A stretch of DNA of 63,576 bases, filler included, from Octopus bimaculoides (taxonomy: Eukaryota): assembly GCF_001194135.2 (NCBI RefSeq). It is 7 parts of 7 records of this genome, joined end to end, with 100 filler letters (N's around TTAATTAATTAA, not from the genome) between each part and the next. Parts side by side here need not be neighbours in the genome. Positions count along the whole stretch, not along the records: positions 56,946 to 62,217 come from NC_068981.1; 6 more parts are not named here. The stretch is one strand, 5' to 3'. The notes under the pieces were generated by a model. That model had not been told where the DNA came from, ran no database searches, and saw nothing but the letters and a program-made list of their open reading frames with translations. The position numbers and the translations under genes are program-made. Position 1 is the stretch's first letter. Each line of letters starts with the position of its first letter. Positions 4,832-62,419 of the stretch are shown here, one piece after another.

Positions 4832-5014
4832 ATTCGCCTGAGAATTGTTTCGAATCACAGCTGCTGTCCGCTTGCTCCTGTCCCCGTCCTTATCCTGGTT
4901 TTTATTGACGACGAAGTTTTCAGCCCTTACAAATAGCCTTTCATCGTGGTGAAACGGCAGAAGACATACAGTACACAAGCTGGAGTAGATAAGGAAAAGT
5001 TTCGCAAGTCCCAT
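4832..5014 (-). CDS. First coding exon (61 codons) of an unidentified secretory-pathway protein with a furin-type cleavage site; gene continues toward lower coordinates
   Basis: ATG at 5014 in strong context (agaATGg). Translates MGLAKLFLIYSSLCTVCLLPFHHDERLFVRA-ENFVVNKNQDKDGDRSKR-TAAVIRNNSQAN: hydrophobic N-terminus, V-R-A cleavage-like motif, RSKR. Followed exactly at a codon boundary by GTAAGT (4831-4826) and then CT-rich intron-like sequence. Confidence 0.75.
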
Positions 5015-5027
5015 TCTAGATACTGTG

Positions 5028-5028
5028 C

Positions 5029-5073
<45 letters not shown>

Positions 5074-5086
5074 TGTTGTAGTAGTG
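5028..5086 (-). repeat. (CTA)n/(TAG)n trinucleotide repeat in the putative 5' UTR of the minus-strand gene
   Basis: agt repeats on + ending about 13 nt upstream of the ATG at 5014. Confidence 0.9.
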
Positions 5087-5619
5087 GAACATGAGTGTGT
5101 GTTCGTTCGTTTTTTGTTCGGAGCAACGGTGCGACGGAAGATCGGTTGACCGGTTGTATAGCAGGATAGCAATACATCCATCCAATCGGTTGTGTGGTGT
5201 TTCGGTGGAATGCAAGTTGGCATCGAGAAGAGGTACGCGGTACGACGGACGGTGTCGGTCGGTCGGTTTGNNNNNNNNNNNNNNNNNNNNNNNNNNNNNN
5301 NNNNNNNNNNNNNNNNNNNNNNNNNNNNNNNNNNNNNNNNNNNNNNNNNNNNNNNNNNNNNNNNNNNNNNNNNNNNNNNNNNNNNNNNNNNNNNNNNNNN
5401 NNNNNNNNNNNNNNNNNNNNNNNNNNNNNNNNNNNNNNNNNNNNNNNNNNNNNNNNNNNNNNNNNNNNNNNNNNNNNNNNNNNNNNNNNNNNNNNNNNNN
5501 NNNNNNNNNNNNNNNNNNNNNNNNNNNNNNNNNNNNNNNNNNNNNNNNNNNNNNNNNNNNNNNNNNNNNNNNNNNNNNNNNNNNNNNNNNNNNNNNNNNN
5601 NNNNNNNNNNNNNNNNNTA

Positions 5620-5665
<46 letters not shown>

Positions 5666-5756
5666 CACATGTATGTATATTTACGCAAACTCATACATAC
5701 ATTCATTTATACATACTCACACAAACACACACCCATGCATACATACTCATTTACAA

Positions 5757-5787
<31 letters not shown>

Positions 5788-5840
5788 TACACACATATAC
5801 AACCATATACATACCAATATATAAATGTATAGATGTGTGC

Positions 5841-5881
<41 letters not shown>

Positions 5882-7074
5882 CTCATGCTCATATTAATTC
5901 TTATACAGGCTTCATTCATTGGACTGCGGTCATGTTGGAGCAGCACTAAAGTGTTTAACTATACCACCACCAGTATATATATACATATATTTTTTTAATT
6001 CTTTCACTTCGTTTATCGATTCTTTCTGTCGAATTGCCGCGTTAAAAGACACTAAAACCGATTTGGATTTTAGCAGTAGATCTTCGATAGCGACCTTGAT
6101 GTATATAAATTCATGTGTATGCATGTGTGTGTGTATAAACGAGTAAGGAATTATATACACATAGGAGTTTGTGTTTGCACACAAACATAAACGTAAGCAT
6201 ATTTAAATAAAACATACTATACACACACACACGCACGCACATGTGCACGAGCGCACGTATAATATACATAGATATGAAAATACATACACACATGACAGAC
6301 CTCTGTTTTGTGTGTATAAGAATACTACAAACTGCAACATGTTCTATATACAATCTTTATTATAAACATATATAAATGAATATACACAAGCGTGTGTATA
6401 TGTACATATATATATATACATATGCATGTGAGAGTGTGTATGTGTGTGTATATATATATATATTTGTATTATTATTTGTATTATATATATATATATATAT
6501 GCGTGTGTGTGTGTGTGCAAGTGTGTNNNNNNNNNNATTATTTGTATTATATATATATATATATATATATATACATGCATGTTTTTGCATAGCTATACAT
6601 ATATCCATATATATACATATATATATATGTGTGTGAGTGAGTGAGTGAGCGTGTGTGTATGTGCGTGCGTGCGTACATGCGTGTGTGTGTGTTTTTTCAT
6701 CCAAACATGTACATACAGATACATATACAGTCTAAAGAAATGCGGCGTCAACTGATCCTCAGGTAGTTTTACCGGTAAATATTCCACCTGTTCGATCAAC
6801 TATCCAACAAACTTCCCAAGTGGCCGAGTACTCCACGGACACGTGTATCCTTAACGTAATCCTCCTGCAAAGTCAATCTGATTGCATCAGAAAGCAGGTG
6901 TGGGCGGGGCTTTAATTAACAGGTAAAAATCCATCCAAAAGGTTTCCAGACTATTCCTCTCTACCAAGTTTTACTCATCTGGTTTAGGTGAAGTAGAAAA
7001 TACAAAGCGTCCGTCAGGGTTCGAACCCGAGTAATAACGACTGAAACGCCATCCCTGTCTATAATGATTCTTTT

Positions 7075-7511
7075 GTCTGTTACCTGTTTCAATCGTTTGA
7101 CTGTGGGCATGTTGGGGGCACCGCTTTGCTGGGTTTAGTTGGGCAAAATTGACCTCTGTGCTTATTATAAGCCTAATATTTATTCTATCGTTCTCTTTTG
7201 CCGACTCAATAACTTAGAGGAATGCAAACAAACTAACATAGGTTTTCAAGCTGTCGTGAGGACAGAAAACTCCACACACACACACATTTTGAGGACTTTA
7301 TTCTCGGTGATTTTTACCAAGTTCTGTCGAACAGGTAACTCCATGATTTTGAAAATTCCGAAGGTCCAGAATAATTGCTCATTACATTTTCGAAAGAAGC
7401 TTGGATCTTAAACTAGTAGTGGCCTTTTGGCCAGGAAATTCAATCAATAATTTCACGTCTATATCCCAGGGTGTAAAAACGATCTTTGCTTTATTATTTT
7501 TTTACTTCTCA

Positions 7512-7891: not shown

Positions 7892-10184
7892 NNNNNNNNN
7901 NNNNNNNNNNNNNNNNNNNNNNNNNNNNNNNNNNNNNNNNNNNNNNNNNNNNNNNNNNNNNNNNNNNNNNNNNNNNNNNNNNNNNNNNNNNNNNNNNNNN
8001 NNNNNNNNNNNNNNNNNNNNNNNNNNNNNNNNNNNNNNNNNNNNNNNNNNNNNNNNNNNNNNNNNNNNNNNNNNNNNNNNNNNNNNNNNNNNNNNNNNNN
8101 NNNNNNNNNNNNNNNNNNNNNNNNNNNNNNNNNNNNNNNNNNNNNNNNNNNNNNNNNNNNNNNNNNNNNNNNNNNNNNNNNNNNNNNNNNNNNNNNNNNN
8201 NNNNNNNNNNNNNNNNNNNNNNNNNNNNNNNNNNNNNNNNNNNNNNNNNNNNNNNNNNNNNNNNNNNNNNNNNNNNNNNNNNNNNNNNNNNNNNNNNNNN
8301 NNNNNNNNNNNNNNNNNNNNNNNNNNNNNNNNNNNNNNNNNNNNNNNNNNNNNNNNNNNNNNNNNNNNNNNNNNNNNNNNNNNNNNNNNNNNNNNNNNNN
8401 NNNNNNNNNNNNNNNNNNNNNNNNNNNNNNNNNNNNNNNNNNNNNNNNNNNNNNNNNNNNNNNNNNNNNNNNNNCGTTTTATTTGCTTTTTTCATTTTAA
8501 ATTTGCTTTAGCCCTAACCCTAGGGTTAAGGTTAATTGTTTCAGAATCGTTTGTTTATGTAGTCGGCACTTAATGTATATCGGCTGAATGGACGTCAGTG
8601 ATTGGTTGAAATTACAGAAATACGACAACTTTAACATGGAATAACTTATGGATTTCTTTTTTTTTTAAGAAGACTAAGAGAAAAAGATGTTTTATATGAC
8701 ACGTTCTACCAGTGTTCCAAGTTTCAAAGTGTTTCGTTAATGAAAAATGTGGCCCCCGTTTTAAAAAAGATCCCGGACAACTTCTCTTTATCGTCATAGA
8801 TGCATAGACGTGTAAGATGACTAACCTCCACATTACCTAGGCGGCCAACAAGTGTTTGTTTAGGAGACTAACACAAGCTAACGGTGTACACCAGAAAGCT
8901 GTACCCTACAAAGCTTACGTCCTCAGCACACACCCCCATTAAGACGAGTCAAGTGCGACGTCTCAACATTTCCACCCACGCAGCCTGAAACGGATTCTGG
9001 ACATGAAAGTGGACTGACCGAGTGACCAACAACGAAGTAATGGTTGGCGCTCAAATGTCCAACTTCTTCTTCCTACTTCATCTACGATGTTTCCGCTGCT
9101 TGGAATCGCCGTCTACGTAGTCACTCAGTTTGCTAAAAATAGCAGCTAACTCTCAGTCTGTCCTCTTGAAAGAGCATGAGACACTGTGTAATGTAATTGT
9201 AATTAGATTATATGACAAAGAGAAAAAAAGTGGCTACTATTGGAACGCATTATTTTGATCGTAGGTTTCTTTTACTCTTTTACTTGTTTCAGTCANNNNN
9301 NNNNNNNNNNNNNNNNNNNNNNNNNNNNNNNNNNNNNNNNNNNNNNNNNNNNNNNNNNNNNNNNNNNNNNNNNNNNNNNNNNNNNNNNNNNNNNNNNNNN
9401 NNNNNNNNNNNNNNNNNNNNNNNNNNNNNNNNNNNNNNNNNNNNNNNNNNNNNNNNNNNNNNNNNNNNNNNNNNNNNNNNNNNNNNNNNNNNNNNNNNNN
9501 NNNNNNNNNNNNNNNNNNNNNNNNNNNNNNNNNNNNNNNNNNNNNNNNNNNNNNNNNNNNNNNNNNNNNNNNNNNNNNNNNNNNNNNNNNNNNNNNNNNN
9601 NNNNNNNNNNNNNNNNNNNNNNNNNNNNNNNNNNNNNNNNNNNNNNNNNNNNNNNNNNNNNNNNNNNNNNNNNNNNNNNNNNNNNNNNNNNNNNNNNNNN
9701 NNNNNNNNNNNNNNNNNNNNNNNNNNNNNNNNNNNNNNNNNNNNNNNNNNNNNNNNNNNNNNNNNNNNNNNNNNNNNNNNNNNNNNNNNNNNNNNNNNNN
9801 NNNNNNNNNNNNNNNNNNNNNNNNNNNNNNNNNNNNNNNNNNNNNNNNNNNNNNNNNNNNNNNNNNNNNNNNNCTAAGAACGTAACTGAAGTGAAATAAC
9901 TACGACCAGGGATGGAAAGAGTTTCGTGAAACTTACCTCATCGAGGGCGTATAGATATTAGAATGGCCGACCGATATCATTTTTGTTTTGTTTCACAGAA
10001 CTCTATTATCATAAATATTATTTTTTATTTGCCCTGTATTTGAAAAGGAGAATCTTTCTCGAAATATTTTAGGACCATTTATCATATCTTTACTGTTTTT
10101 ATTTATTGATACCATCTTACATATTCTGCTTTTATTTTTCACCTACATTCCTCAACGGCCTTTTTTCTTTCAAACACGCTGGTG

Positions 10185-10223
<39 letters not shown>

Positions 10224-10638
10224 GCAAGTTATCCTACAATAGCGTGAAAAGTGGATAAATATTCCAGAGATATATGTAAACTTACCGTGTTACCCATATT
10301 AGCATCAACATGATATATTGTAACAAGGCCAGACTTTTCAATGACAAGTACAAACCGTCCGACTGGTTTCTATATTTTTCATAAATCGAATTTCATGCAG
10401 AAGGCTCGATTCGACCCGAAATTATATCAAAGACATTTGTTCAAGATATCGAGCGATAGGATTGAACCAAGAACCATACGGTTATGAAACTAACTTCGTA
10501 ACCACTCAGCCATGCATGCATTCAGACACATGTATTAATTAGCCTTTTAGTTTAAAAAGCGGAGGCTGGTAGGTCAGTGGTATTGGCTGAAGTGCACACA
10601 CACACATACACACACACACATACACACACACACACGTG

Positions 10639-10688
<50 letters not shown>

Positions 10689-11720
10689 TGAGTGGACAAA
10701 CGGAAGTGGTGTGCAACATATTTATAAGAGTTACATATATATTTTTAGTAATAATTTGACTCAACTCCACATGACTTGACGTTTCGTGAGGGCGTAGGAC
10801 ACGTCCATCTCATCAGATATTAAGTGTGTGTGTGTGTGTGTATACATAGTGATACCCGCAGGTATGTGAGAGAGAAAGAGTGAATGTGTAGAGTATGGCC
10901 GTATGAAGAGGAGAGGAAAAGAAAGAAAAATAATAAGAGATAATGGAAGAATAAGGAGATTTACAAAAGGCGACGAAAAGAAAACAAATATATCTATAAG
11001 CACACACACACATATCCACACTTACACCTATCTACACATATACAAACACACGCACACACTCACAGACAGACGTGTATACACATACATGTGTGCGTGTGTG
11101 TGTGTGTATGTGTGTAAGTCAAAAGAGATTAAGAGATTAGAATAGGCTAGAGAGATTGGGGTGAAGAAAAGGTACTTTGGTAAGGATGGTTAACGAAGGA
11201 AAAAAAAAAGAGATGATGATGATGATGATGATAATGAAAACCATGATGACGATGATGGTAGTGGTGGCAGTGGTAGGGGTTGTGGTAGATGTAGTGGTGT
11301 CTTACTGAGGAAGATGATGGCGATGGTGATGAAGAAGACAATCGTGATGATTATCATACCAGCATTGATAGGAGTACGATGACAGACGATGGTGTAAGTG
11401 ATGGTGGCGATGGTGTTAGTGGTATGATGGTTATGGTGGTAGTGGTGGTGGTGGTAAAAGTGATGGTGAAGATGGAGGTGATAGTTTCGATTTTGTTTCT
11501 TTTTTTCCCCCTCGCTTATTTATATTGGTATTTCCAAAGGTTTACGTTGTAGAAGTCCTTCGCTTCTCCGTACGAAAATAAACTAAATTAGACTGAAAAA
11601 ATAATCAAACAACGTATGTATATACATACATGCAAACATACATACATACATAAAAGCATAAATACAGAAATGCACAAATACATACGAACATATAACTATA
11701 CACGCCTACAGCTATACACT

Positions 11721-11917
11721 TTTTTACTCTTTTACTTGTTTCAGTCATTTGACTGTGGCCATGCTGGAGCTCCGCCTTTAGTCGAGCAAATCGACCCCGG
11801 GACTTATTCTTTGGAAGCCTAGTACTTATTCGTCGGTCCCTTTTGCCGAACCGCTAAGTTACGGGGACGTAAACACACCAGCATCGGTTGTCAAGCGATG
11901 TTGAGGGGACAAACACA

Positions 11918-11963
<46 letters not shown>

Positions 11964-12016
11964 CATATATATATATACGACAGGCTTCTTTCAGTTTCCG
12001 TCTACCAAATCCACTC
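11721..12016 (-). mobile_element. SINE family B, truncated by gap
   Basis: Near-consensus reverse copy: ttttacttgtttcagtcatttgactgtggccatgctggagc...gaaccgctaagttacggggacgtaaacacaccagcatcggttgtcaagcg. Confidence 0.9.
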
Positions 12017-12909
12017 NNNNNNNNNNNNNNNNNNNNNNNNNNNNNNNNNNNNNNNNNNNNNNNNNNNNNNNNNNNNNNNNNNNNNNNNNNNNNNNNNNNN
12101 NNNNNNNNNNNNNNNNNNNNNNNNNNNNNNNNNNNNNNNNNNNNNNNNNNNNNNNNNNNNNNNNNNNNNNNNNNNNNNNNNNNNNNNNNNNNNNNNNNNN
12201 NNNNNNNNNNNNNNNNNNNNNNNNNNNNNNNNNNNNNNNNNNNNNNNNNNNNNNNNNNNNNNNNNNNNNNNNNNNNNNNNNNNNNNNNNNNNNNNNNNNN
12301 NNNNNNNNNNNNNNNNNNNNNNNNNNNNNNNNNNNNNNNNNNNNNNNNNNNNNNNNNNNNNNNNNNNNNNNNNNNNNNNNNNNNNNNNNNNNNNNNNNNN
12401 NNNNNNNNNNNNNNNNNNNNNNNNNNNNNNNNNNNNNNNNNNNNNNNNNNNNNNNNNNNNNNNNNNNNNNNNNNNNNNNNNNNNNNNNNNNNNNNNNNNN
12501 NNNNNNNNNNNNNNNNNNNNNNNNNNNNNNNNNNNNNNNNNNNNNNNNNNNNNNNNNNNNNNNNNNNNNNNNNNNNNNNNNNNNNNNNNNNNNNNNNNNN
12601 NNNNNNNNNNNNNNNNNNNNNNNNNNNNNNNNNNNNNNNNNNNNNNNNNNNNNNNNNNNNNNNNNNNNNNNNNNNNNNNNNNNNNNNNNNNNNNNNNNNN
12701 NNNNNNNNNNNNNNNNNNNNNNNNNNNNNNNNNNNNNNNNNNNNNNNNNNNNNNNNNNNNNNNNNNNNNNNNNNNNNNNNNNNNNNNNNNNNNATTGTGA
12801 AGCCTGCCAGAAAGCGATATTGTGACACCGAGTTTGTACGACCGTCCACTTGATACGAACGTCTCTTTTGTCGCTTGTTCATTATTTGACCATAAATACA
12901 CATACATAC

Positions 12910-12948
<39 letters not shown>

Positions 12949-13829
12949 AAACTGTCTTTGCTTCGCTGTTATTAAATTTAGTTAAGATATGACTGTTGGG
13001 TTATTTGAGCTTCAGTTCGCCGCGTCGAATGCCTGAGTTAGAGTTTTTTTCGATGGTGAGAAATAGATAAATCAACTTCCACTAAATTGACATGAAATCA
13101 CTCGCTGATACACCGCAAACTCTACACTTGAGACGGGCTGTCTCTTCTCGCTCTACTACTACTACCACTACTACTACTCCCACCATCTCCTCTTTTCAGA
13201 GCTGGCGTTTCTCTTTCTAGTTTTACTCAAAACTCTCATGTCACTCCTCTCTTCTTTTCAATCATATTGCGTACTCTCGGCTTTTCGTCCTTACTACCTG
13301 TTGCAAAGGAGATGTACTACTGAAGCTACAATCAGTAGCTTCACTAGCACTTCCATCGGTCTTGGAGAGCTTCCACTGGCCCATGTCCACTATGCGTCTG
13401 CTTATGTATGAGTTACCCAAGGCAAGAATTCATATTTTAAAAGAAGACTAGCAATTTCCCATCCGTGCGAGTCTCCCCTTTCTACGACGCCGATGTGTTG
13501 TACGACAAGGGAAAAGCCGCCGACTTGGGCCGACATAGCAATGACAACAGTATTGTCGCAGGTAATGGGGGGGGGGTGTCAAAATCCAANNNNNNNNNNA
13601 TGGGGGGGGGGTGTCAAAATCCAAAGACACGGGACAAATACTGCAAAGCATCTCGTACGATTTTGTAATAGTTCCGTTTATCTAACATCCAACACCTTGT
13701 ATGCCTATTATCTGTCAGTCCAGAAGTTCCCGTCCATACCGAAACCTTCGGTCTGTAGTTCTGGCATGTTCCTCATCCATCGCCGGTTCGCTATGCCTAT
13801 TGTGACTCCACCATATTACTCATTGTTAC

Positions 13830-17211: not shown

Positions 17212-18148
17212 TAGATAGATAGATAGATAGATATACACACGTACATACATACATACAGACAGACAGACAGACATACAAAGCAGACAGACCGACCGACCGA
17301 CAAGCCCGACCGCCCGACCGACAGATAGACAGATACAAAAAAGAGAGACACAGAGAGAGATAGAGATAGAGAGGTGGAGGGGGAGGAAGAGTGCTATAAC
17401 ATTACTGCAGAGAGGCAGGCAAGCAGCGGCTATCCGCTGTTACCCAGTAACACTATCAGCACCGCCACCACCACCACCACCGTCACTACCACCATCATCA
17501 TATGAATCACTGACCTCATTATACAAATGTTTATTACAACTCTAAAATTCCCCCTTATGAAACTATCGAGGTGAGCTCACTTCTGGCACTGCCAGCTCCA
17601 CTCCCAGCGATGGTTCATCTCCCATCAACTTTCAGCTATTGTTTACTACCAAAATCCGGAATCGATACTCATTCACAACTGGAAGTTTTCAACGAAGGAA
17701 AGTCGACAAGTTTGACAATCTCCGCCAAAACCATGCCGTAACAAACCTCTGCTTTATCTATCCACAATTATATACGCACAATTATATACTCGTATATATA
17801 TATATATATATATACATATATGAATGTATACGCATTGCCGGACTGATTCGAAAGTAAGTTCATATATAACTAACTGTTGTTGTTGATGTTTATGCTTCCT
17901 TGGTGTAATATTTGGTGAGAAATTGTAAGATATTCTGGTCTTATGATTGTCTCGTGCTTGCTTTTTAGCCTTGTGTTAATGCTGATCGAAAGCATTCCAG
18001 CCGAGACCATCCCTTTTATATACGCGCCCGAACAATCCTGTATACGTATGTGTGTTTATATAAAGTTTGCGTATGTATGTATACGCATACATACACATAT
18101 ATACGTATATATACATATACATACACACCCGTCCACCCACTAACGTTC

Positions 18149-18230
<82 letters not shown>

Positions 18231-19269
18231 GAACATACATACATACCTATACATACTATGCGTGACAATAAGCGTGGGGTTTGACTGCTGCTTCTAGCAG
18301 ACCGAATGACCTCTATCAAGGACTCCTTTGTTCATAAGATCATACTGTTTTTTATTTATTTCCAACAGCTGATAGTGATTCGAGTGGAATTTGGTTGCTA
18401 TTTCTCGCAGGCTGATAGCAGAGCTGCCCCCCCCCCCACACCTGTTGCTCGACGTTCCGTTTTCTAGAGTTTACAAAGGAAGAAATATTTAGAGAAATAT
18501 TTCAAATATTTTTCCTTATAAAATATGCTCCAATGTTTTTTTAAGGTGCTGGGGCGTGGGGGTAGGGGGTTAGGATTCTTTTGTTTAAGGGGAGAAAATT
18601 AATAAATATTTATACAGAGGGAAACGAAGTTGGTTCGTACGTTCGTCGTCGCTGTTGTTTTTGTTGTGGTTTTGTAGTTGTTTAGTCACAGGTTAGCTCG
18701 ATCCAAGCACATTCCAGTCGTGACCATCTTATCTTTTTTATCTGGGAAATATTGGGACAACATCATGTAATATATCTTCATTTTAAGCATTAAGAATAAG
18801 ATTTGAATGCAATTTGGCTGCTATTTCTAGTGAGGTGACCATCTCTACAGGGTCCCTTAACTTACTATTTCGTACAACGTGGGAAGCCTCTCTCATTGGG
18901 TTTGTAAATTTGACAAGTAAATGGTGATACTCTCACAATCTCTTAGTTTAGATCTTATTATATATGACTGTGCGTCGAACAATGTACCCTGCAAATATTA
19001 TTTAGGAACGCCCACATATGAGAAATAACGCCACCGCCAAAATAGCGCGTAGTTTTAATTCTGTTGTGAAAGAGCGTTAAAGTTCAGGAGCATCATGGAG
19101 CTCAGCACGTTTCTTCGCCATTCTGATGGGGTTTTTTGGAGTAGCAGACCTTCGAAGTCCCATACCACACGAGAAAGGAAAAACAGTACCTTTTTTTAAC
19201 CTTCGCCCTTTTTGTAGTATTTCAGTTTTACATCAAACGGAAAATATGCTTATCAAATTTTTTTTAATG

Positions 19270-19610
19270 AATTTTTACTTGTTTCAGTCATTGGTCTACG
19301 GCCATGCTGGGGCACCATCTTGAAGGGCTTAGTCAAACAAATCGACCCCAGTCTGGTACTTATTGTATTGGTCTAATTTACCGAACCGCTAAGTTACGGA
19401 GATGTAAACAAACTAAAACCAATTGTCAAGCAGTGAGGTGGGATGGGAACACAAATACACGCACATCTTATCGGGTTTCGATACAGTTTCCATCTACGAA
19501 ATCCATTCACAAGGCTTTGGTCGGCCCAAAGTGCCACACAACGGGATTGAACCCAAAACCATACGGTCGCAAAGCTCGCTTCTAACCACACAACCGGGCC
19601 TGCTTCTACG
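19270..19610 (-). mobile_element. SINE family B (internally deleted)
   Basis: Reverse tail and body motifs as in the other family B copies. Confidence 0.8.
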
Positions 19611-19827
19611 AGTTCTTTTCCCCAAATTTAATCAAATGTTTCGCACACATTTTGCATGCTGATACTCACACTTTCATACCCCTTTTCTTTTCCAAAGATG
19701 CATGGGACTTCGAAGGACAACTGTTCCAAAATTCCTCCCTCACCACAAAGTTCTTTCATTCAAGCTGCCACAATACTAACCCGAGTACAGTTGTAATTGT
19801 TCCAAATATAAACACATAGTCAGGATA

Positions 19828-20035
19828 TGCTGTATATAAACATAGAAAGAGTGGTGTGTTGTATATAAACAGAAAGTATACTGTATATAGACATAGAAAG
19901 AGCGGTATAATGTATATAAATATAGAAATAGGGGTGTATTATAAATATAAACATAGAAAGTGGGGTGTATTATATATATATAAACATTAAAAAAATGGGG
20001 TGTGCTGTATATAAACATAGAAAAGAGTATGCCTT
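19828..20035 (+). repeat. Degenerate ~30-bp minisatellite, about 7 units
   Basis: Recurring tgtatataaacatagaaag...ggggtgt unit. Confidence 0.75.
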
Positions 20036-56575: not shown

Positions 56576-57139
56576 TTACGTATAATAATCCCTAACATAT
56601 CGCCGAGACTTTCTCCTTCTATGATACTGATTAACCAGTGAAGTTTTGGGATTATTCAATCCATAATGAGGACCTGACATCTTCGAATTGACTATATAAC
56701 ATATTTTTATGGATATTTTTATGGAGATTTTTATGGTAGTGTTTATTTCTAATTCAACACGTGGCGTGGCACTTAGCTGACCGCTGATTATGATTATGTA
56801 TATAATTATAGAATATATATATATTTTTATACACACACACACACANNNNNNNNNNNNNNNNNNNNNNNNNNNNNNNNNNNNNNNNNNNNTTAATTAATTA
56901 ANNNNNNNNNNNNNNNNNNNNNNNNNNNNNNNNNNNNNNNNNNNNATATATATATATATGGCAATGTTGCTGTTGCTGTTGCTGTTGCCGTCGATGCCGT
57001 CGGGGAAACTGCCAATGATGTCGCTGGTGCTGTTATCGTTATTGTTGTTAACTATGGAGATGGTGGTGGCATTGCTGGTTCTGTTCCCGTATCTACGGCT
57101 GCTACTGGTTCTACCAGTGGTATTGCCAGGGTTTGCTAG

Positions 57140-57445
57140 TACTTCAGCTTCGTAGACGACCCCTTTGGTTTTGCAGTGACCTCCCATGGTGCATGTGTTG
57201 CGCTCTTCGCATGAACATCCTTCCTCGTCCCGTGCCCTAGGGCCGCTAACTAGAATGCTCTTAATATTGGTCGACATGTAAAAGACGCTCTAACTTTGTG
57301 TCTGTTGAAAATGGGCCCGTACATATGGGAGCTGGTGAAATGCTTATCTATTAATTTAAGGAATATTCTACTTACGGGCGTTTTTGTGTTAAGAGAGAAG
57401 GTGGAGAGGCAAACCAAATGGTATTTCTGCGTCACTTCCTTCATT
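57140..57445 (-). mobile_element. Penelope-like (Naiad-type) RT-thumb/GIY-YIG linker remnant
   Basis: RRNTIWF..PP/FSLNTKTPVSRIFLKLIDKHFTSSHMYGPIFNRHKVRASFTC...CSCEERNTCTMGGHCKTKGVVYEAEV. Confidence 0.8.
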
Positions 57446-57636
57446 AAAATTTAAATTAGGAAATATTACAACAAAAATAGGAATTTGCAAAGCACAAAAT
57501 ACAATATGACTTCTGCTTCGCTGGCCACAACATTTGTCTTTCTAATAAATAAATAATAAAATATATTTAAATTCATTTTTAAGTAAATACTCTTTATTTC
57601 AAATAGTTACGAAATAACGAAACTAAAAGTATTCTA

Positions 57637-57670
57637 TATGACTTCTATATATCTTATTTTTCTCTTACAG
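57637..57670 (+). other. 3' splice acceptor 10 nt upstream of the 736-aa ORF start
   Basis: tatgac branch-like motif, pyrimidine tract tcttattttttctctt, then ACAG ending at 57670, followed by aaaacgaaatATG. Confidence 0.7.
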
Positions 57671-57680
57671 AAAACGAAAT

Positions 57681-59891
57681 ATGGCTGCCATGCAGATGAC
57701 AATAACAGCAACCGGTACACTTTTCCTTGTGATTACTTTTATTGTCATTCTAATATCATTAAACACAGAAGCGAAGGAACTTGGAAATAATTGTGAAATT
57801 AAGATTTCTCCCGATGTTAATAAGATTTTATCTCGTTTAGTAAGATCAGATAAAAAGGTTTTCAATTTTGAAGTCCATTTATCCGATAAAAAGCTAGATG
57901 ACCTTCTGAAACCTGTATCAATGGATTATTTCGCGAACGCGAGACAATTTACCTGGATTCCAGACGTACCAGATGGTTTGATGGCGTATAAGAATTTCTA
58001 TTATGATTTTTCAATTTACTCTTTGGATTTATTAGGTGCTTACATTGCTACTCCAAGGACTGATATCGATATAAATTGTGGAAAACAAAATATTCAGAGA
58101 CATGATTTAATATATTTGATTTTCGGCGAATTGAAGAGAATTGTATTTATCGATACATTGAAAATAGGAGAATCTGGTTACATGTGTTTTCTAATAAATT
58201 TATCTCAGGACATGAAGAAGAACAGCCCTGAGTCATTTAAAGCTTACAGAAGATTGGGTATAAATCGAGAATTAGTGAAGAACTATTGCTGTAAACTCTA
58301 TAAAAATGGAAGCAATGTTTATCGCCCAAAATCGATTTGTTCTGGAAATATCATGGAAAATAGTATGTTTGTCAATTACGCAAATATCGTCGGAGCTGTT
58401 TTATGGGCATATTTTCCGTTAATCGTTAGTCTTCTTTCACAGGCTAAATTACCTTCATTTCCCCATCAAATCACATTGCCATACGAGTCAGAATGGATCA
58501 ACAAAAAACATAATACTTACAGTTTCTCTTATTTTCTGTCTTGGTTATTTTGTTTCCATAATTCCTCTTCCTTTGCCTCAAGACTAAGAAGATTCTTTTG
58601 TATTATATTTTCTCTCTCAATAAGTTTCATGGATATTTTAATGCATTACTTCTTTTTATATAAAACAATAAAAATACTTTTCCAAGATGGTATACCATTG
58701 GGCCAACGTTCCTTAATATTAGGAATCTCAGAAAGTTATAAGAATACAGATGGCTTCTTCGGGGGTCCGTTAGTGTGGTTAATCTGTTACATGTCTTTCA
58801 ACTTTATCCTCTTCGTTCTTCCCAGTCGATTAAGTGAGACTATCGCTTATAGTACATTACATCGCAGTTCCACTTGCACGTTTCTCATTCAAAATAAGAG
58901 ATTATTAGAGAAGTATGGCAGTTTAAATGTTTCTACACTACAGGATTATGATCTACTCTATGCAATAATGAAAGCTAATATTTCTACTGCTTTAAACCCA
59001 AGTTTCTGGTATTTAATAATTTATACTTGGTTTGACCGTATAAAGAAAATTTGGTCATATTACTACAAGAGAAAAATTTTCTGGCGATTCGTTACACTTT
59101 GGCCTTTTGTTTCCATTACAATTTTATTTGCTGTATTTTTTATCTGTGAATTATTTCTGTGCCTCTTGTATTACGGAATCCCAATTGTTTACTTGATTTC
59201 AACTTTACCTTTCAGCTATTCCAAAGTTTATATTTTCCCACTCTATAGGAATAATAATCGTATTTTCGAGATTGCTGCTGTACTTTTTACTATTCTATCG
59301 TTTCCATTTTATATATTATGGGCTCTTTATTCAATCTACATATTTCTTACAAATTTTCAAATCCTATGTAGCTACATATTTACAATAGCTGTTGCAGTTC
59401 TTGCTAAACCTGATAATGTCGGTGACGTATGGTTTGTTGCCATGTTTTTTGTGTATACCGTTGCAATTGTGAACGCTGTCATCAATCAGTATCAGTCAGT
59501 AATATCTAAGTCTATAAAACTCACCAAAACTGTTTGTCCAAGATTGGTTCAGGTAAAATATGGAGAGGAATTCATAAATGCCAATTTGTTCAAGACAATT
59601 GTTGACCATCATTTTCCATTGAGATTCGAGATTGGTAAATCCATTATGAAACTGTTTCTAATCGTATCTTTTTTCTTTGCTTGCAACAATATAATAAGTC
59701 GAGAAGACTTGGACTTATCAGGATTCACAAGGATTACTTTGATATTGATGACGTCATTGATACCTAAACTGTTGTCTATAATTAATTCTAAACTGAGTTT
59801 TTTTACATCCATGACACATACAATTATCGAGACAATAATTACATTTGAGGATGGCAATGCATCACATGCCAGTCAGTCAATTTCTTATTAA
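57681..59891 (+). CDS. Uncharacterised 736-aa multi-pass membrane protein (signal peptide, ~200-aa Cys-containing ectodomain, roughly 8-11 hydrophobic segments); single coding exon
   Basis: Uninterrupted 2.2-kb ORF of complex sequence in repeat-saturated DNA. Hydrophobic residues 13-27 end in T-E-A. Cys at 38, 133, 169, 203, 204, 220; sequons N173 (NLS) and N209 (NGS). Several 20-45 aa hydrophobic stretches from residue ~229 to ~700. Confidence 0.93.
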   Translation: MAAMQMTITATGTLFLVITFIVILISLNTEAKELGNNCEIKISPDVNKILSRLVRSDKKVFNFEVHLSDKKLDDLLKPVSMDYFANARQFTWIPDVPDGLMAYKNFYYDFSIYSLDLLGAYIATPRTDIDINCGKQNIQRHDLIYLIFGELKRIVFIDTLKIGESGYMCFLINLSQDMKKNSPESFKAYRRLGINRELVKNYCCKLYKNGSNVYRPKSICSGNIMENSMFVNYANIVGAVLWAYFPLIVSLLSQAKLPSFPHQITLPYESEWINKKHNTYSFSYFLSWLFCFHNSSSFASRLRRFFCIIFSLSISFMDILMHYFFLYKTIKILFQDGIPLGQRSLILGISESYKNTDGFFGGPLVWLICYMSFNFILFVLPSRLSETIAYSTLHRSSTCTFLIQNKRLLEKYGSLNVSTLQDYDLLYAIMKANISTALNPSFWYLIIYTWFDRIKKIWSYYYKRKIFWRFVTLWPFVSITILFAVFFICELFLCLLYYGIPIVYLISTLPFSYSKVYIFPLYRNNNRIFEIAAVLFTILSFPFYILWALYSIYIFLTNFQILCSYIFTIAVAVLAKPDNVGDVWFVAMFFVYTVAIVNAVINQYQSVISKSIKLTKTVCPRLVQVKYGEEFINANLFKTIVDHHFPLRFEIGKSIMKLFLIVSFFFACNNIISREDLDLSGFTRITLILMTSLIPKLLSIINSKLSFFTSMTHTIIETIITFEDGNASHASQSISY

Positions 59892-59959
59892 ATAAAAATG
59901 CTTTGAAATTTTCAGAAGGTATTTTCTATTCTCTAAATACGTTGTATAATTGGAATAAA
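59891..59959 (+). terminator. Candidate polyadenylation signals for the 736-aa gene
   Basis: AATAAA at 59891-59896 (overlapping the TAA stop) and at 59954-59959. Confidence 0.4.
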
Positions 59960-60047
59960 GGAAATCTGCATTGACGTATATAGAAAACGCAGAATCACAC
60001 ACACTCACAATATCCCATTGCATACATACATACATACATACATACAT

Positions 60048-60082
<35 letters not shown>

Positions 60083-60340
60083 AACATGTAGACAGGCATA
60101 TACACACATATACATAAATGTAAATTAAATGTACATGTATATGTGTATATGTATATGTGTGTGTATGTATGTATGTATGTATGTATGTATGTATGTATGT
60201 ATGTATGTATGTATGTGTGTGTGTGTCCGTGTAATTTGCGACATTGCATGTGTATGCAGATGTTTAATCTAACTTTACTCCTATACACGCGCGCACGCAT
60301 ATGTATAGGAGTTAAATGTTTTTATCTGAGGCCGTATATT

Positions 60341-60770
60341 CGTTTCTACTCTAGGCACAAGGCCTGAAATTTTGTTGGAGAGGGCCAGTCGAGTAGATCG
60401 TATCAGTTGCATACTGGTACGCAACTGGTATTTAATTTGTCGACCCCGAAAGATTGAACGGCAAAGTCGACCTCAGCGGAATTTGATCTCAGAACACAAA
60501 GACAGATGAAATACCGCTAAGCATTTCGCCCGTCGTGCTAACGATTCTTATATCTTTATTGCCCACAAGGGGCTAAACATAGAGGGTACGGATAAAGGGA
60601 TTAATCGATTGCATCGACCTCAGTGCGTAACTGGTACTTAATTTATCGACCCCGAAGGATGAAAGGCAAAGTCGACCTCGTTGGAATTTGAACTCAGAAC
60701 GTAGAGGCAGACGAAATACTGCTAAGCATTTCGCCCGGCGTGCTAACGTTTCTGCCAGCTCATCGCCTTT
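60341..60770 (-). mobile_element. Two tandem SINE family A copies (tail type 2 at ~60341-60548; tail type 1 at ~60547-60770)
   Basis: Two reverse heads ggaatttga(a/t)ctcagaac...aagcatttcgccc...gctaacg. Confidence 0.9.
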
Positions 60771-61205
60771 TCTGAAGCCGTATATTTAAAGAAAGACGAT
60801 TGCAGTGTGAAGAGAATTTAGATACAGCAAAACACAAAAACTGTTAACTTCACTTAAATCATAATTATTAACGACAGAAGCAGTATTAGTACCAAGAGAC
60901 AATCTTTATATCCAACTTAACGTGGATGATTTGTTAGAACGCCCAATACTGAATTATCTACCTTGAGAGGTCTTCCCATATCGACGCATGGTGAATAAGA
61001 GCACACACATTCACATCGTTCGCAAACGAGAATTGTCTGATACGTTAAGGAAAATGTAAAGATTGCCTTCTTGTACTAATAATACTTTTGTCGTTAATAA
61101 TTATTCTGTCACAAGCCTACTGGCTATTTGCGACGTCAGTGCCTAAGATGTCACTAAAATACTACATATTGTTGGTCGTGAAATTCGGTTGGTATGCGGC
61201 AACCG

Positions 61206-61860
61206 GACGAACTAAACAGCTTAGACAGAAAGACAAGGAAGTCGCTGACGAGATATGGGATACCCGACCCAAAAAGTAACACAGACAGACTTAATGTAGC
61301 AAGTAAAAGAGGGGGAGCGGGTTTATTGGATGCGAATACAGCATTAGAGCAGAAGAAAACAAAATAGCATGGTAGGTAAAAATGCCACAGAACCGCTATT
61401 ATTGGAAGTAAGAAGGTCAGGCTTGTGTGGGATGGGAGATTGCAAAGATAACGTATTGTACAAGAACTTGAGAATGAATGAAACTGAAAATAGGTGGCTA
61501 AAGAAAAGAATGCATGGTCAATTTCATAGAGATGTTGAAGATAAGACAGACAGAGAAAAAAGATGGCTATGGATGACTAAAACTGATTTAAAACCAAGAA
61601 CAGAGACTCTAATCTGTGCTGCCTAAGAGCAAGCATTAAGAATCAATTACATCAAATACAGAATAGACAACACAGCAGAAAATGATTAGTACAGAGTTTG
61701 TAGACAAAATGGTGAAACCGTATTACCAGTCAAATTATGCCACTAACCCAGAAAGAATATAAGAGAATTCATGAAAATAGAGCAAAGATTGTCCATTGGA
61801 CACTTTGCAACAAGTATAGACTCGACAGAGGAAAATAGTGGTACAAAGACAACAAGATAA
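61206..61860 (+). mobile_element. R4/Dong-clade (RLE) non-LTR retrotransposon fragment
   Basis: DELNSLDRKTRKSLTRYG..PKSNTDRL...WLKKRMHGQFHRDV..DREKRWLWM...LKPRTETLICAA*EQALRINYIKYRID...YRVCRQNGETV...EYKRIHEN.AKIVHWTLCNKY; stops and frameshifts; followed by (TAA)n. Confidence 0.8.
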
Positions 61861-62419
61861 TAATAATCATAATAATAATAATAATAATAAAGGGATAGAC
61901 TATATCCGAGTAAATAATACTCATTGAAATTTATTCCTATTTTTCCAAATATAATGATGTATTTTAACTTGATACCTCCACTACCCGAACAGCGATCGTA
62001 AACACACGTGTTACATCAAAATCAGACCATCTTCGAACCCAAAAACACCATGTACAAAAAAATTACAAACAGATTAAATAACACCGGTATTATTCCACCC
62101 AAGAATAACAACCGAGAAGTACGTACTGTAAGCTTGTTACGAAAAAAGTACGAAGATATGAACGTGCAAAACAATCTGACAACAGAAATAAACGAACCGG
62201 TACCCTACGAAAACGATNNNNNNNNNNNNNNNNNNNNNNNNNNNNNNNNNNNNNNNNNNNNTTAATTAATTAANNNNNNNNNNNNNNNNNNNNNNNNNNN
62301 NNNNNNNNNNNNNNNNNATAGAAAAACAGAAACAGGTGTCTGCAACAGAGGAGACACATGGCTACCCCAGCAGGAGGGGGGAAAGAGAGAGAGAGAGAGA
62401 GAGAATATGAGGAAGAAGA

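Follow-up and report, generated by a model that had tools for sequence, protein, structure and literature searches.

An octopus gene from an uncharacterised mollusc family is predicted to encode a nine-helix membrane protein capped by a six-cysteine ectodomain

Lineage-restricted, uncharacterised families of membrane proteins are common in mollusc genomes. Among the better described systems, TMEM87, GPR107/108, Wntless and SID-1/SIDT carry a disulfide-stabilised lumenal or extracellular domain of ~200–300 residues on a multi-helix bundle; their ectodomains are β-sandwiches, their bundles contain 7–8 or 11 transmembrane (TM) helices, and their structures have been solved. STRA6 is not known to possess a signal peptide together with a 200-residue, Cys-rich ectodomain. 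It is a protein of ~670 residues with nine TM helices, its N-terminus outside and its C-terminus inside the cell (PDB entry 5SY1). Here we describe a gene at positions 57681..59891 (+ strand) of a 63,576-nucleotide stretch of Octopus bimaculoides DNA, which we refer to as the window, and compare its product with these proteins. We regard it as an even call whether this is, in full, a functional gene of an uncharacterised mollusc family with members of 730–860 residues, the product of which would be an ectodomain-capped, nine-helix membrane conduit or transducer.

The gene contains the one long open reading frame (ORF) in the piece of the window that extends from 56946 to 62217, and this ORF forms a complete coding sequence of 736 codons plus TAA within one exon, exactly as a first-pass annotation of the DNA had described it. 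Given a local A+T content of ~65% and a stop probability of 0.072 per codon, the chance of finding 736 codons without a stop is ~1e-24. The encoded protein is identical to that of a called gene in the O. bimaculoides assembly GCA_001194135.2 (CM046601.1 193,529,759–193,531,969). A syntenic locus in O. sinensis (CM016859.1) aligns with that of the window gene in the same order along more than 4 kb and in flanking blocks; nucleotide identity is 91.3% within the ORF and 90.7% and 88.7% in the flanks, with gap columns accounting for 1 of 2210 positions in the ORF versus 103 of 1817 in the flanks. The ratio of nonsynonymous to synonymous substitution rates (dN/dS, or ω) between the orthologues is 0.38 (Nei-Gojobori; bootstrap 95% confidence interval 0.29–0.51). 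When the same 193 substitutions were placed according to the substitution spectrum of the flanks, the neutral simulations yielded an apparent dN/dS of 0.74 (0.55–1.02) and a mean of 6.9 stops, versus none observed, and they left the ORF open in 0.2% of cases (P = 0.002). From the dN/dS, open-frame and gap results we conclude that the window gene is kept by purifying selection of moderate strength, as had been suspected. The selection is spread over the protein: paralogues have an overall dN/dS of 0.46, with 0.29 in the ectodomain and 0.50 in the remainder, and the corresponding orthologue values are 0.40 and 0.36.

An exhaustive HMMER profile search over 1.84 billion representative sequences returned 143 members of the family at E ≤ 1e-3, 123 of them at E ≤ 1e-10. 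Most have 750–860 residues and match nearly end to end, many covering profile positions ~30–735. A word-indexed search recovered octopod relatives only, from O. bimaculoides, O. sinensis, O. vulgaris, Argonauta (53% identity) and a contig in ENA (38%), and the octopod paralogues are 53–81% identical to the window protein. All 16 species named by the sources are molluscs, comprising Octopus (three species), Argonauta, Ostrea, Mercenaria, Mytilus (five species), Haliotis, Mizuhopecten, Mya and Potamilus; the restriction to molluscs is read from these names, and unlabelled members from ENA and Logan carry no taxon. Full-length homologues range in identity to the window protein from 81% down to ~17%. 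They include LOC106877664 and LOC106875165 in O. bimaculoides, LOC115209402 in O. sinensis, LOC125647777 in Ostrea edulis, LOC128555111 in Mercenaria, LOC128233741 in Mya and XP_067649040.1 in Haliotis asinina, and they share with the window protein the signal peptide, the six-Cys ectodomain, the GGP, Glu490 and Pro/Tyr motifs described below, and the single coding exon. The bivalve and gastropod members are flanked by ordinary host genes (Ank, Arf, RING, PLAT). Every entry is annotated as “uncharacterized” or “hypothetical”, with the exception of two that UniRef names STRA6. The label “orphan” given in the first-pass annotation is thus apt in that the family is uncharacterised and unmatched, and misleading in that its 143 representatives are spread across cephalopods, bivalves and gastropods; the proposal that the gene belongs to an uncharacterised family was borne out. 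For the Haliotis asinina member (positions 5001–7493 of its extract) there is a weak precomputed match to Pfam PF28478 (DUF8415), so that entry may already cover the family in whole or in part. A search of the literature found no description of the family and no mention of either DUF8415 or the member loci.

Copy number in Octopus is ~6–10 per species. The paralogue LOC106877664, 81% identical to the window protein, lies on the opposite strand ~90 kb from the window gene, and homology between the two is confined to the ORF with ~240 bp upstream and ~115 bp downstream. A partial duplicate is located ~37 kb off, also on the opposite strand (CM046601.1 193,483,111–193,499,333, reversed, positions 5890–6732). 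The copy comprises codons 1–244 and 103 bp upstream of them at 95% nucleotide identity, after which the homology ends abruptly, and it has been modelled as a spliced product of 314 residues, scarcely more than the ectodomain. Within 10 kb on either side of the window gene no further family fragments were found. On Mya arenaria CP111016.1, two members that are 84% identical stand in tandem on the same strand, 5 kb apart and with one coding exon each (positions 10001–12505 and 17428–20010 of the extracted locus). The family therefore duplicates locally, bivalves included, and paralogue clusters, which the first-pass annotation had suggested looking for, exist in both Octopus and Mya.

In an alignment of 60 family sequences, the mean column identity of which is 22%, residues C38, C169, C203, P381, Y604, P646 and P695 are invariant. 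A further set, W92, S114, L118, C133, C204, C220, P246, G361-G362-P363, F442, W443, R453, E490, P501 and Y592, is conserved in at least 90% of the sequences, and N439 is also among the conserved residues of the membrane body. The window protein has all six ectodomain cysteines as well as the GGP motif (361–363), P381, E490, P501, Y592, Y604, P646 and P695. As the cysteines are conserved across the alignment, the six-Cys ectodomain is an ancient feature that defines the family. Octopods have replaced some residues that are conserved elsewhere in the family, with the changes W90F, G116D and G139Q in the ectodomain and P481I in the membrane body. The ectodomain is no more variable than the membrane body, the values being 0.71 versus 0.67–0.79 among octopod paralogues and 0.24 versus 0.24–0.28 family-wide.

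An AlphaFold2 model built on the 60-sequence alignment gave a predicted local distance difference test score (pLDDT) of 85 and a predicted template-modelling score (pTM) of 0.81; a model from an octopod-only alignment (pLDDT 51) was discarded. Residues 1–31 (57681..57773, + strand) form a putative signal peptide, with a hydrophobic core at residues 12–26 followed by NTEA|KE, the likely cleavage site. The N-terminal helix has low pLDDT and is not packed against the bundle, and relatives begin with typical signal peptides. Residues 32–228 (57774..58364, + strand) are predicted to constitute an extracellular or lumenal α/β ectodomain, with cysteines at positions 38, 133, 169, 203, 204 and 220 and N-glycosylation sequons at N173 and N209. 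The modelled part, residues 36–207, consists of six strands and four main helices with pLDDT values mostly between 84 and 96, and the ectodomain as a whole is predicted to hold three disulfides. Across 56 diverse family members the ectodomain carries 4.3 sequons per sequence, or ~2.2 per 100 residues compared with 0.4–0.9 per 100 elsewhere, which makes it ~3-fold denser in sequons than any other loop. Within the limits of sequence and model, these features show that the protein enters the secretory pathway and that its N-terminal domain, glycosylated and disulfide-bonded, faces the non-cytoplasmic side.

The membrane body, residues 229–701 (58365..59783, + strand), can be read from the AlphaFold secondary structure and the distribution of Lys and Arg as nine TM helices, at residues 229–252, 297–325(–335), 363–393, 466–499, 501–523, 527–575, 581–618, 647–674 and 681–701. 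These would form a tightly packed bundle of unusually long helices that anchors the protein. Further modelled elements are helices at 422–462 and 634–644, a β-hairpin at 623–633 and a C-terminal helix at 706–735. Hydropathy gives about ten hydrophobic stretches, and the hydrophobic blocks together with the polar segment ...FINANLFKTIVDHHFPLRFE... fit the predicted helices. Among 56 diverse members, Lys and Arg are concentrated at 297–305, 422–465 (6.4 Lys+Arg versus 1.1 Asp+Glu), 619–646 and 702–736. Since the sequon and Lys/Arg statistics fit this arrangement, the topology is best read as nine membrane passes that leave the N-terminus on the outer or lumenal face and the C-terminus in the cytoplasm; the basic helices at 422–465 and the hairpin and helix at 619–646 would then be cytoplasmic, as would the basic C-terminal helix (residues 702–736, 59784..59888, + strand), the least conserved region. 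Glu490 (codon 59148..59150, + strand), placed in TM4 within the motif E-x-x-L-C-x-x-Y-Y-G-x-P, is the sole charged residue within a TM helix that is near-invariant (96%). Neither the membrane body nor the ectodomain showed internal repeats in an hhalign comparison. Signal peptide, six cysteines, two sequons, hydrophobic blocks and polar loop are thus all where the first-pass annotation had placed them, and the nine helices fall inside its estimate of about 8–11.

No family in the databases searched accounts for the protein. Against Pfam-A, the window protein returned no match at E ≤ 10, and no match recurred in 12 octopod members, in 60 family members or in ten distant relatives and ten from the weakest tail of the search; NCBIfam returned none for the window protein. 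PDB sequences gave no match with either the single protein or a 12-sequence profile, and the 60-sequence profile produced noise only (E ≥ 1.4). Foldseek comparison with the PDB returned a best E of 0.36 and TM-scores of ~0.1, with TRP, SGLT and ABC entries appearing as noise at E > 0.3, and comparison with BFVD gave a best E of ~1. Signatures of G-protein-coupled receptors (GPCRs), Cys-loop receptors, TRP channels, innexins, solute carriers (SLC) and other curated channels, receptors and transporters were absent by Pfam, NCBIfam and PDB fold, in keeping with the motifs reported missing in the first-pass annotation. Sequence, profile and solved-structure comparisons place the family in none of the characterised families covered in Pfam, NCBIfam and the PDB. 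Two outcomes had been named beforehand as counting against the proposal, a confident full-length match to a characterised family or to a transposable-element or viral protein, and a lack of expression combined with a dN/dS near 1; no such match appeared, and dN/dS lies below the neutral value rather than near 1.

The name “Receptor for retinol uptake STRA6”, which UniRef gives to the O. bimaculoides paralogues A0A0L8GSN3 and A0A0L8GRC4, was examined separately. A STRA6 bait sequence served solely to fetch genuine STRA6 proteins from the databases. As a control, this bait scored 869 bits against the Pfam RBP_receptor hidden Markov model (HMM) and matched PDB 5SY1 at 3e-169, and the fetched STRA6 proteins all carry this domain (PF14752). 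The same HMM was unmatched in 12 members of the window gene's family at E ≤ 10 and in 60 members at E ≤ 1. Aligned by hhalign with a 16-sequence STRA6 alignment, the 60-sequence family profile gave a probability of 0.08% (E = 0.62). The family profile searches of the PDB missed 5SY1, and the entry does not occur among the 50 matches listed by Foldseek (of 103 at E ≤ 10), none of which was significant. The STRA6 label on the two paralogues is therefore unsupported. The TM9SF proteins were treated in the same way. A TM9SF bait scored 696 bits with the EMP70 HMM (PF02990), which was unmatched in the ~90 family members scanned, even at E ≤ 1, and hhalign with TM9SF4 gave a probability of 0.5%, a weak comparison in that the target side consisted of one sequence. 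The copy of the PDB that was searched holds no TM9SF chain, so the Foldseek negative says nothing on the nonaspanin fold.

As to what the protein does, we tentatively lean towards a membrane conduit (transporter or channel) or a transducer rather than an enzyme or a passive scaffold, and we hold this with less than even confidence. It is favoured over an enzyme because no catalytic-type His, Asp, Ser or Lys is conserved in the family alignment, while the conserved Glu490, Tyr and Pro/Gly pattern lies within the membrane. Glu490 hints at a role in transport or gating: buried in TM4, it could form, with Tyr592 and Tyr604 of TM7, a polar site at which a cation or a small ligand is bound or translocated. 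The conserved helix-breaking Pro and Gly residues would allow the bundle to flex and change conformation, and the disulfide-locked ectodomain on top might serve as a partner-binding or regulatory lid. On the opposite side, the juxtamembrane helix with the motif NPxFW...R453 and the hairpin at 619–646 could provide a cytoplasmic coupling surface. A bolder version of this proposal, which we consider doubtful, would make the octopus protein the first examined member of a structurally new class of ectodomain-capped, nine-helix channels, transporters or receptors, so far seen only in molluscs, with a fold outside the PDB and a single buried Glu. Local gene amplification in octopods and bivalves would then have served a role at the interface with the environment, for instance in sensing chemicals or contact or in recognition between host and microbes.

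The coding region is uninterrupted, and the gene appears not to be intronless as the first-pass annotation had it. A 3' splice acceptor, consisting of a polypyrimidine tract (cttatttttctctt) followed by acAG, is found at 57653..57670 (+ strand), with the AG at 57669–57670, so that the exon starts at 57671. The last 10 nucleotides of the 5' leader (AAAACGAAAT, 57671..57680, + strand) contain no in-frame stop ahead of the ATG. The sequence directly before the start codon reads ttatttttctcttacAG|AAAACGAAATATG, with the acceptor 11 nucleotides 5' of the ATG. This acceptor is conserved in five cephalopod loci, namely the window, LOC106877664, two loci of O. sinensis and one cephalopod-like ENA locus of 38% identity. 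In O. sinensis, the called 220-residue product is reproduced exactly when the acceptor is joined to a 32-nucleotide exon that lies 7.6 kb further upstream and ends in the donor AAG|GTAGGT; the O. bimaculoides counterpart of this exon could not be placed, with only a 30-nucleotide match found. Because the gene model of O. sinensis employs the conserved acceptor, a 5' intron is very probably present, and the window gene reads as one 5' exon far upstream, non-coding or nearly so, followed by a single coding exon.

This single coding exon is not particular to octopods. The span of the gene equals three times the residue number plus one in Octopus, Mercenaria (823 residues, 2472 nucleotides), Haliotis (830 residues, 2493 nucleotides), Mya (834 residues, 2505 nucleotides), Ostrea (791 residues, 2376 nucleotides) and two ENA assemblies. 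Because it is present in all three mollusc classes, the single coding exon looks ancestral, not the mark of recent duplication or of recent retroposition, and the earlier view that it is typical of a rapidly duplicating receptor family does not fit this distribution. Ten Logan contigs of 2–5 kb carry the Ostrea edulis member. Two of them, from independent runs (SRR25445063 and SRR25445058), are ~3.7 kb long, begin and end at nearly the same points and follow the genomic locus (positions 9315–13050 of the extract) colinearly, which suggests an unspliced transcript of ~3.7 kb with untranslated regions (UTRs) of ~680 nucleotides; in this comparison with the genome the oyster contigs gave no sign of a spliced 5' UTR. 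For the window gene a short 3' UTR is probable at 59891..59959 (+ strand), where candidate polyadenylation signals AATAAA occur at 59891–59896 and 59954–59959, and homology to the paralogue ends at ~60004.

A different function would be that of a chemosensory or other environment-sensing receptor or receptor-channel, in which the ectodomain binds a ligand and gates the body and the octopod expansion supplies sensory diversity in sucker, skin or olfactory organ. The extracellular, glycosylated and disulfide-rich N-terminal domain would suit such a role, as would the local clusters in Octopus (copies at 90 kb and 37 kb), the tandem copies in Mya, the moderately fast evolution (ω ~0.4) and the parallel in gene structure with the intron-poor, tandem nicotinic acetylcholine receptors (nAChRs) of molluscs (PMC6896357). 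The ectodomain is, however, as conserved as the membrane body, with a dN/dS that is not elevated (0.29 versus 0.50 in paralogues and 0.40 versus 0.36 in orthologues). It is not hypervariable and is therefore unlike the usual ligand-diversifying receptor domain, and ~6–10 copies per Octopus species are modest for a chemoreceptor repertoire. The “ectodomain-gated, possibly sensory” character proposed in the first-pass annotation gained no direct support from these data, and we judge a sensory role unlikely. Still more doubtful is an endomembrane, nonaspanin-like protein of the endoplasmic reticulum, Golgi, endosome or lysosome that would sort cargo, handle lipids or maintain the ion balance of organelles rather than act at the cell surface. 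Its plan would be the same as that of TM9SF/EMP70, with a signal peptide, a lumenal domain of ~200 residues and nine TM helices; constraint is spread evenly from end to end, and because the searched PDB has no TM9SF structure, the Foldseek negative does not count against such a fold. The silent EMP70 HMM in ~90 members and the hhalign probability of 0.5% speak against it, as does the combination of mollusc-only named members with lineage-specific duplication, which would be unusual for core trafficking machinery. The lumenal domain of TM9SF proteins is also β-rich, unlike the α/β ectodomain predicted for the octopus protein.

Two further explanations are very improbable. A divergent retinol-binding-protein receptor of the STRA6/RBPR2 type would account for the UniRef names of two paralogues and for the similar size, TM count and orientation, yet HMM, PDB profile, hhalign and Foldseek all fail to connect the families. 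Nor do we give much credence to the idea that there is no selected host gene here at all, the ORF being a chance occurrence, a decaying pseudogene, or a transposon or endogenous-virus gene. Such an origin might be suggested by the many repeats in the surrounding DNA, among them microsatellites and a dispersed element close by, by the intron-free, multi-copy coding exon in a duplicated unit that extends only 240 bp and 115 bp beyond the ORF, and by the truncated copy and the 1-bp deletion in O. sinensis. Against this stand the ~1e-24 chance of an open frame and the rejection of drift (P = 0.002, ω 0.38 versus 0.74), the syntenic orthologue, and a family present in three mollusc classes beside ordinary host neighbours. 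Domains of a transposase, reverse transcriptase, integrase or capsid are absent, BFVD gives no match, the splice acceptor is conserved and of host type, and no terminal repeats were noted between copies.

The reading that we prefer, a functional gene for an ectodomain-capped, nine-helix conduit or transducer, has to be set against several points that weaken it. Nucleotide identity to O. sinensis in the ORF barely exceeds that in the flanks, so that constraint at this level is modest. The O. sinensis orthologue furthermore has a frame-breaking 1-bp deletion at codon 207 (window position ~58301, ~9950 in the extract of the O. sinensis locus), adjoining an A-run (TATAAAAAT becoming TA-AAAAAT), which splits the gene models into products of 220 and 512 residues while the remaining ~530 codons are still open. 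Either the assembly is in error here or the gene has been inactivated very recently, and if the deletion is true, the copy is dispensable in that species. The TM count, nine as opposed to 10–11, depends on modelling the 49-residue hydrophobic helix 527–575 as a single pass, and the proposed mechanism is drawn from the conservation pattern and predicted secondary structure. Finally, the fold comparison covers solved structures and BFVD, and the protein may resemble a characterised family with no solved structure.

The ORFs that flank the window gene in the same piece have no Pfam identity. An ORF at 56946–57277 (− strand) is truncated where the piece begins and has a GC content of 0.48 versus 0.30; it has no Pfam match, encodes a Cys-rich segment (CSCEERNTCTMGGHCKTKGVVYEAEV) followed by a low-complexity tail rich in Asn and Ser, and may be a transposon fragment. 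Microsatellites of the types (CATA)n, (CAGA)n and (TATG)n occupy 60021–60224, just past the end of paralogue homology at ~60004 and shortly after the second AATAAA. A dispersed repeat of ~160 bp at ~60595–60753 (12915–13073 of the window-locus extract) has two further copies, at 83–88% identity, in the LOC106877664 locus and is probably an element resembling a short interspersed element (SINE). A related stretch (12656–13091 of the window-locus extract) matches the second O. sinensis locus.

If fold and function are truly new, the family would be an ancient class of membrane protein known from molluscs alone, which annotation has left blank or mislabelled as STRA6, and mollusc and cephalopod biology would gain a further candidate for sensing or transport at the cell surface. 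The sequences themselves are already public, though only as predictions that have not been characterised and of which two bear a wrong name, and the STRA6 name on the two O. bimaculoides UniProt entries should not enter inferences on retinoid pathways in cephalopods. As a structural target the protein would be well behaved, since its AlphaFold model is confident, it can be cloned as one exon and E490 offers an obvious residue to mutate.

Set beside the described systems, the octopus protein shares features with several of them. With the GOLD-domain seven-TM proteins (TMEM87, GPR107/108, Wntless) and SID-1/SIDT it has in common the general plan of an ectodomain on a helix bundle, and it differs in having no Pfam match and no significant Foldseek match in the PDB. 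The nonaspanins of the TM9SF family are alike in signal peptide, lumenal domain (~200–280 residues) and nine TM helices; TM9SF/EMP70 is, however, pan-eukaryotic and slowly evolving, whereas the named members of the window gene's family are all molluscs and the genes duplicate locally. At the level of the gene, a parallel is provided by the expanded nAChR genes of molluscs, including the lineage of the octopus chemotactile receptors, which have few introns and stand in tandem arrays (PMC6896357). Both groups of mollusc genes thus have coding regions free of introns and have duplicated locally or in tandem, whereas the pentameric Cys-loop proteins with four TM helices are unrelated in architecture to the octopus protein. 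STRA6/RBPR2 resembles the octopus protein in size, in its nine TM helices and in its N-out, C-in orientation, and what sets the octopus protein apart is the predicted cleavable signal peptide followed by a disulfide-bonded ectodomain of 200 residues.

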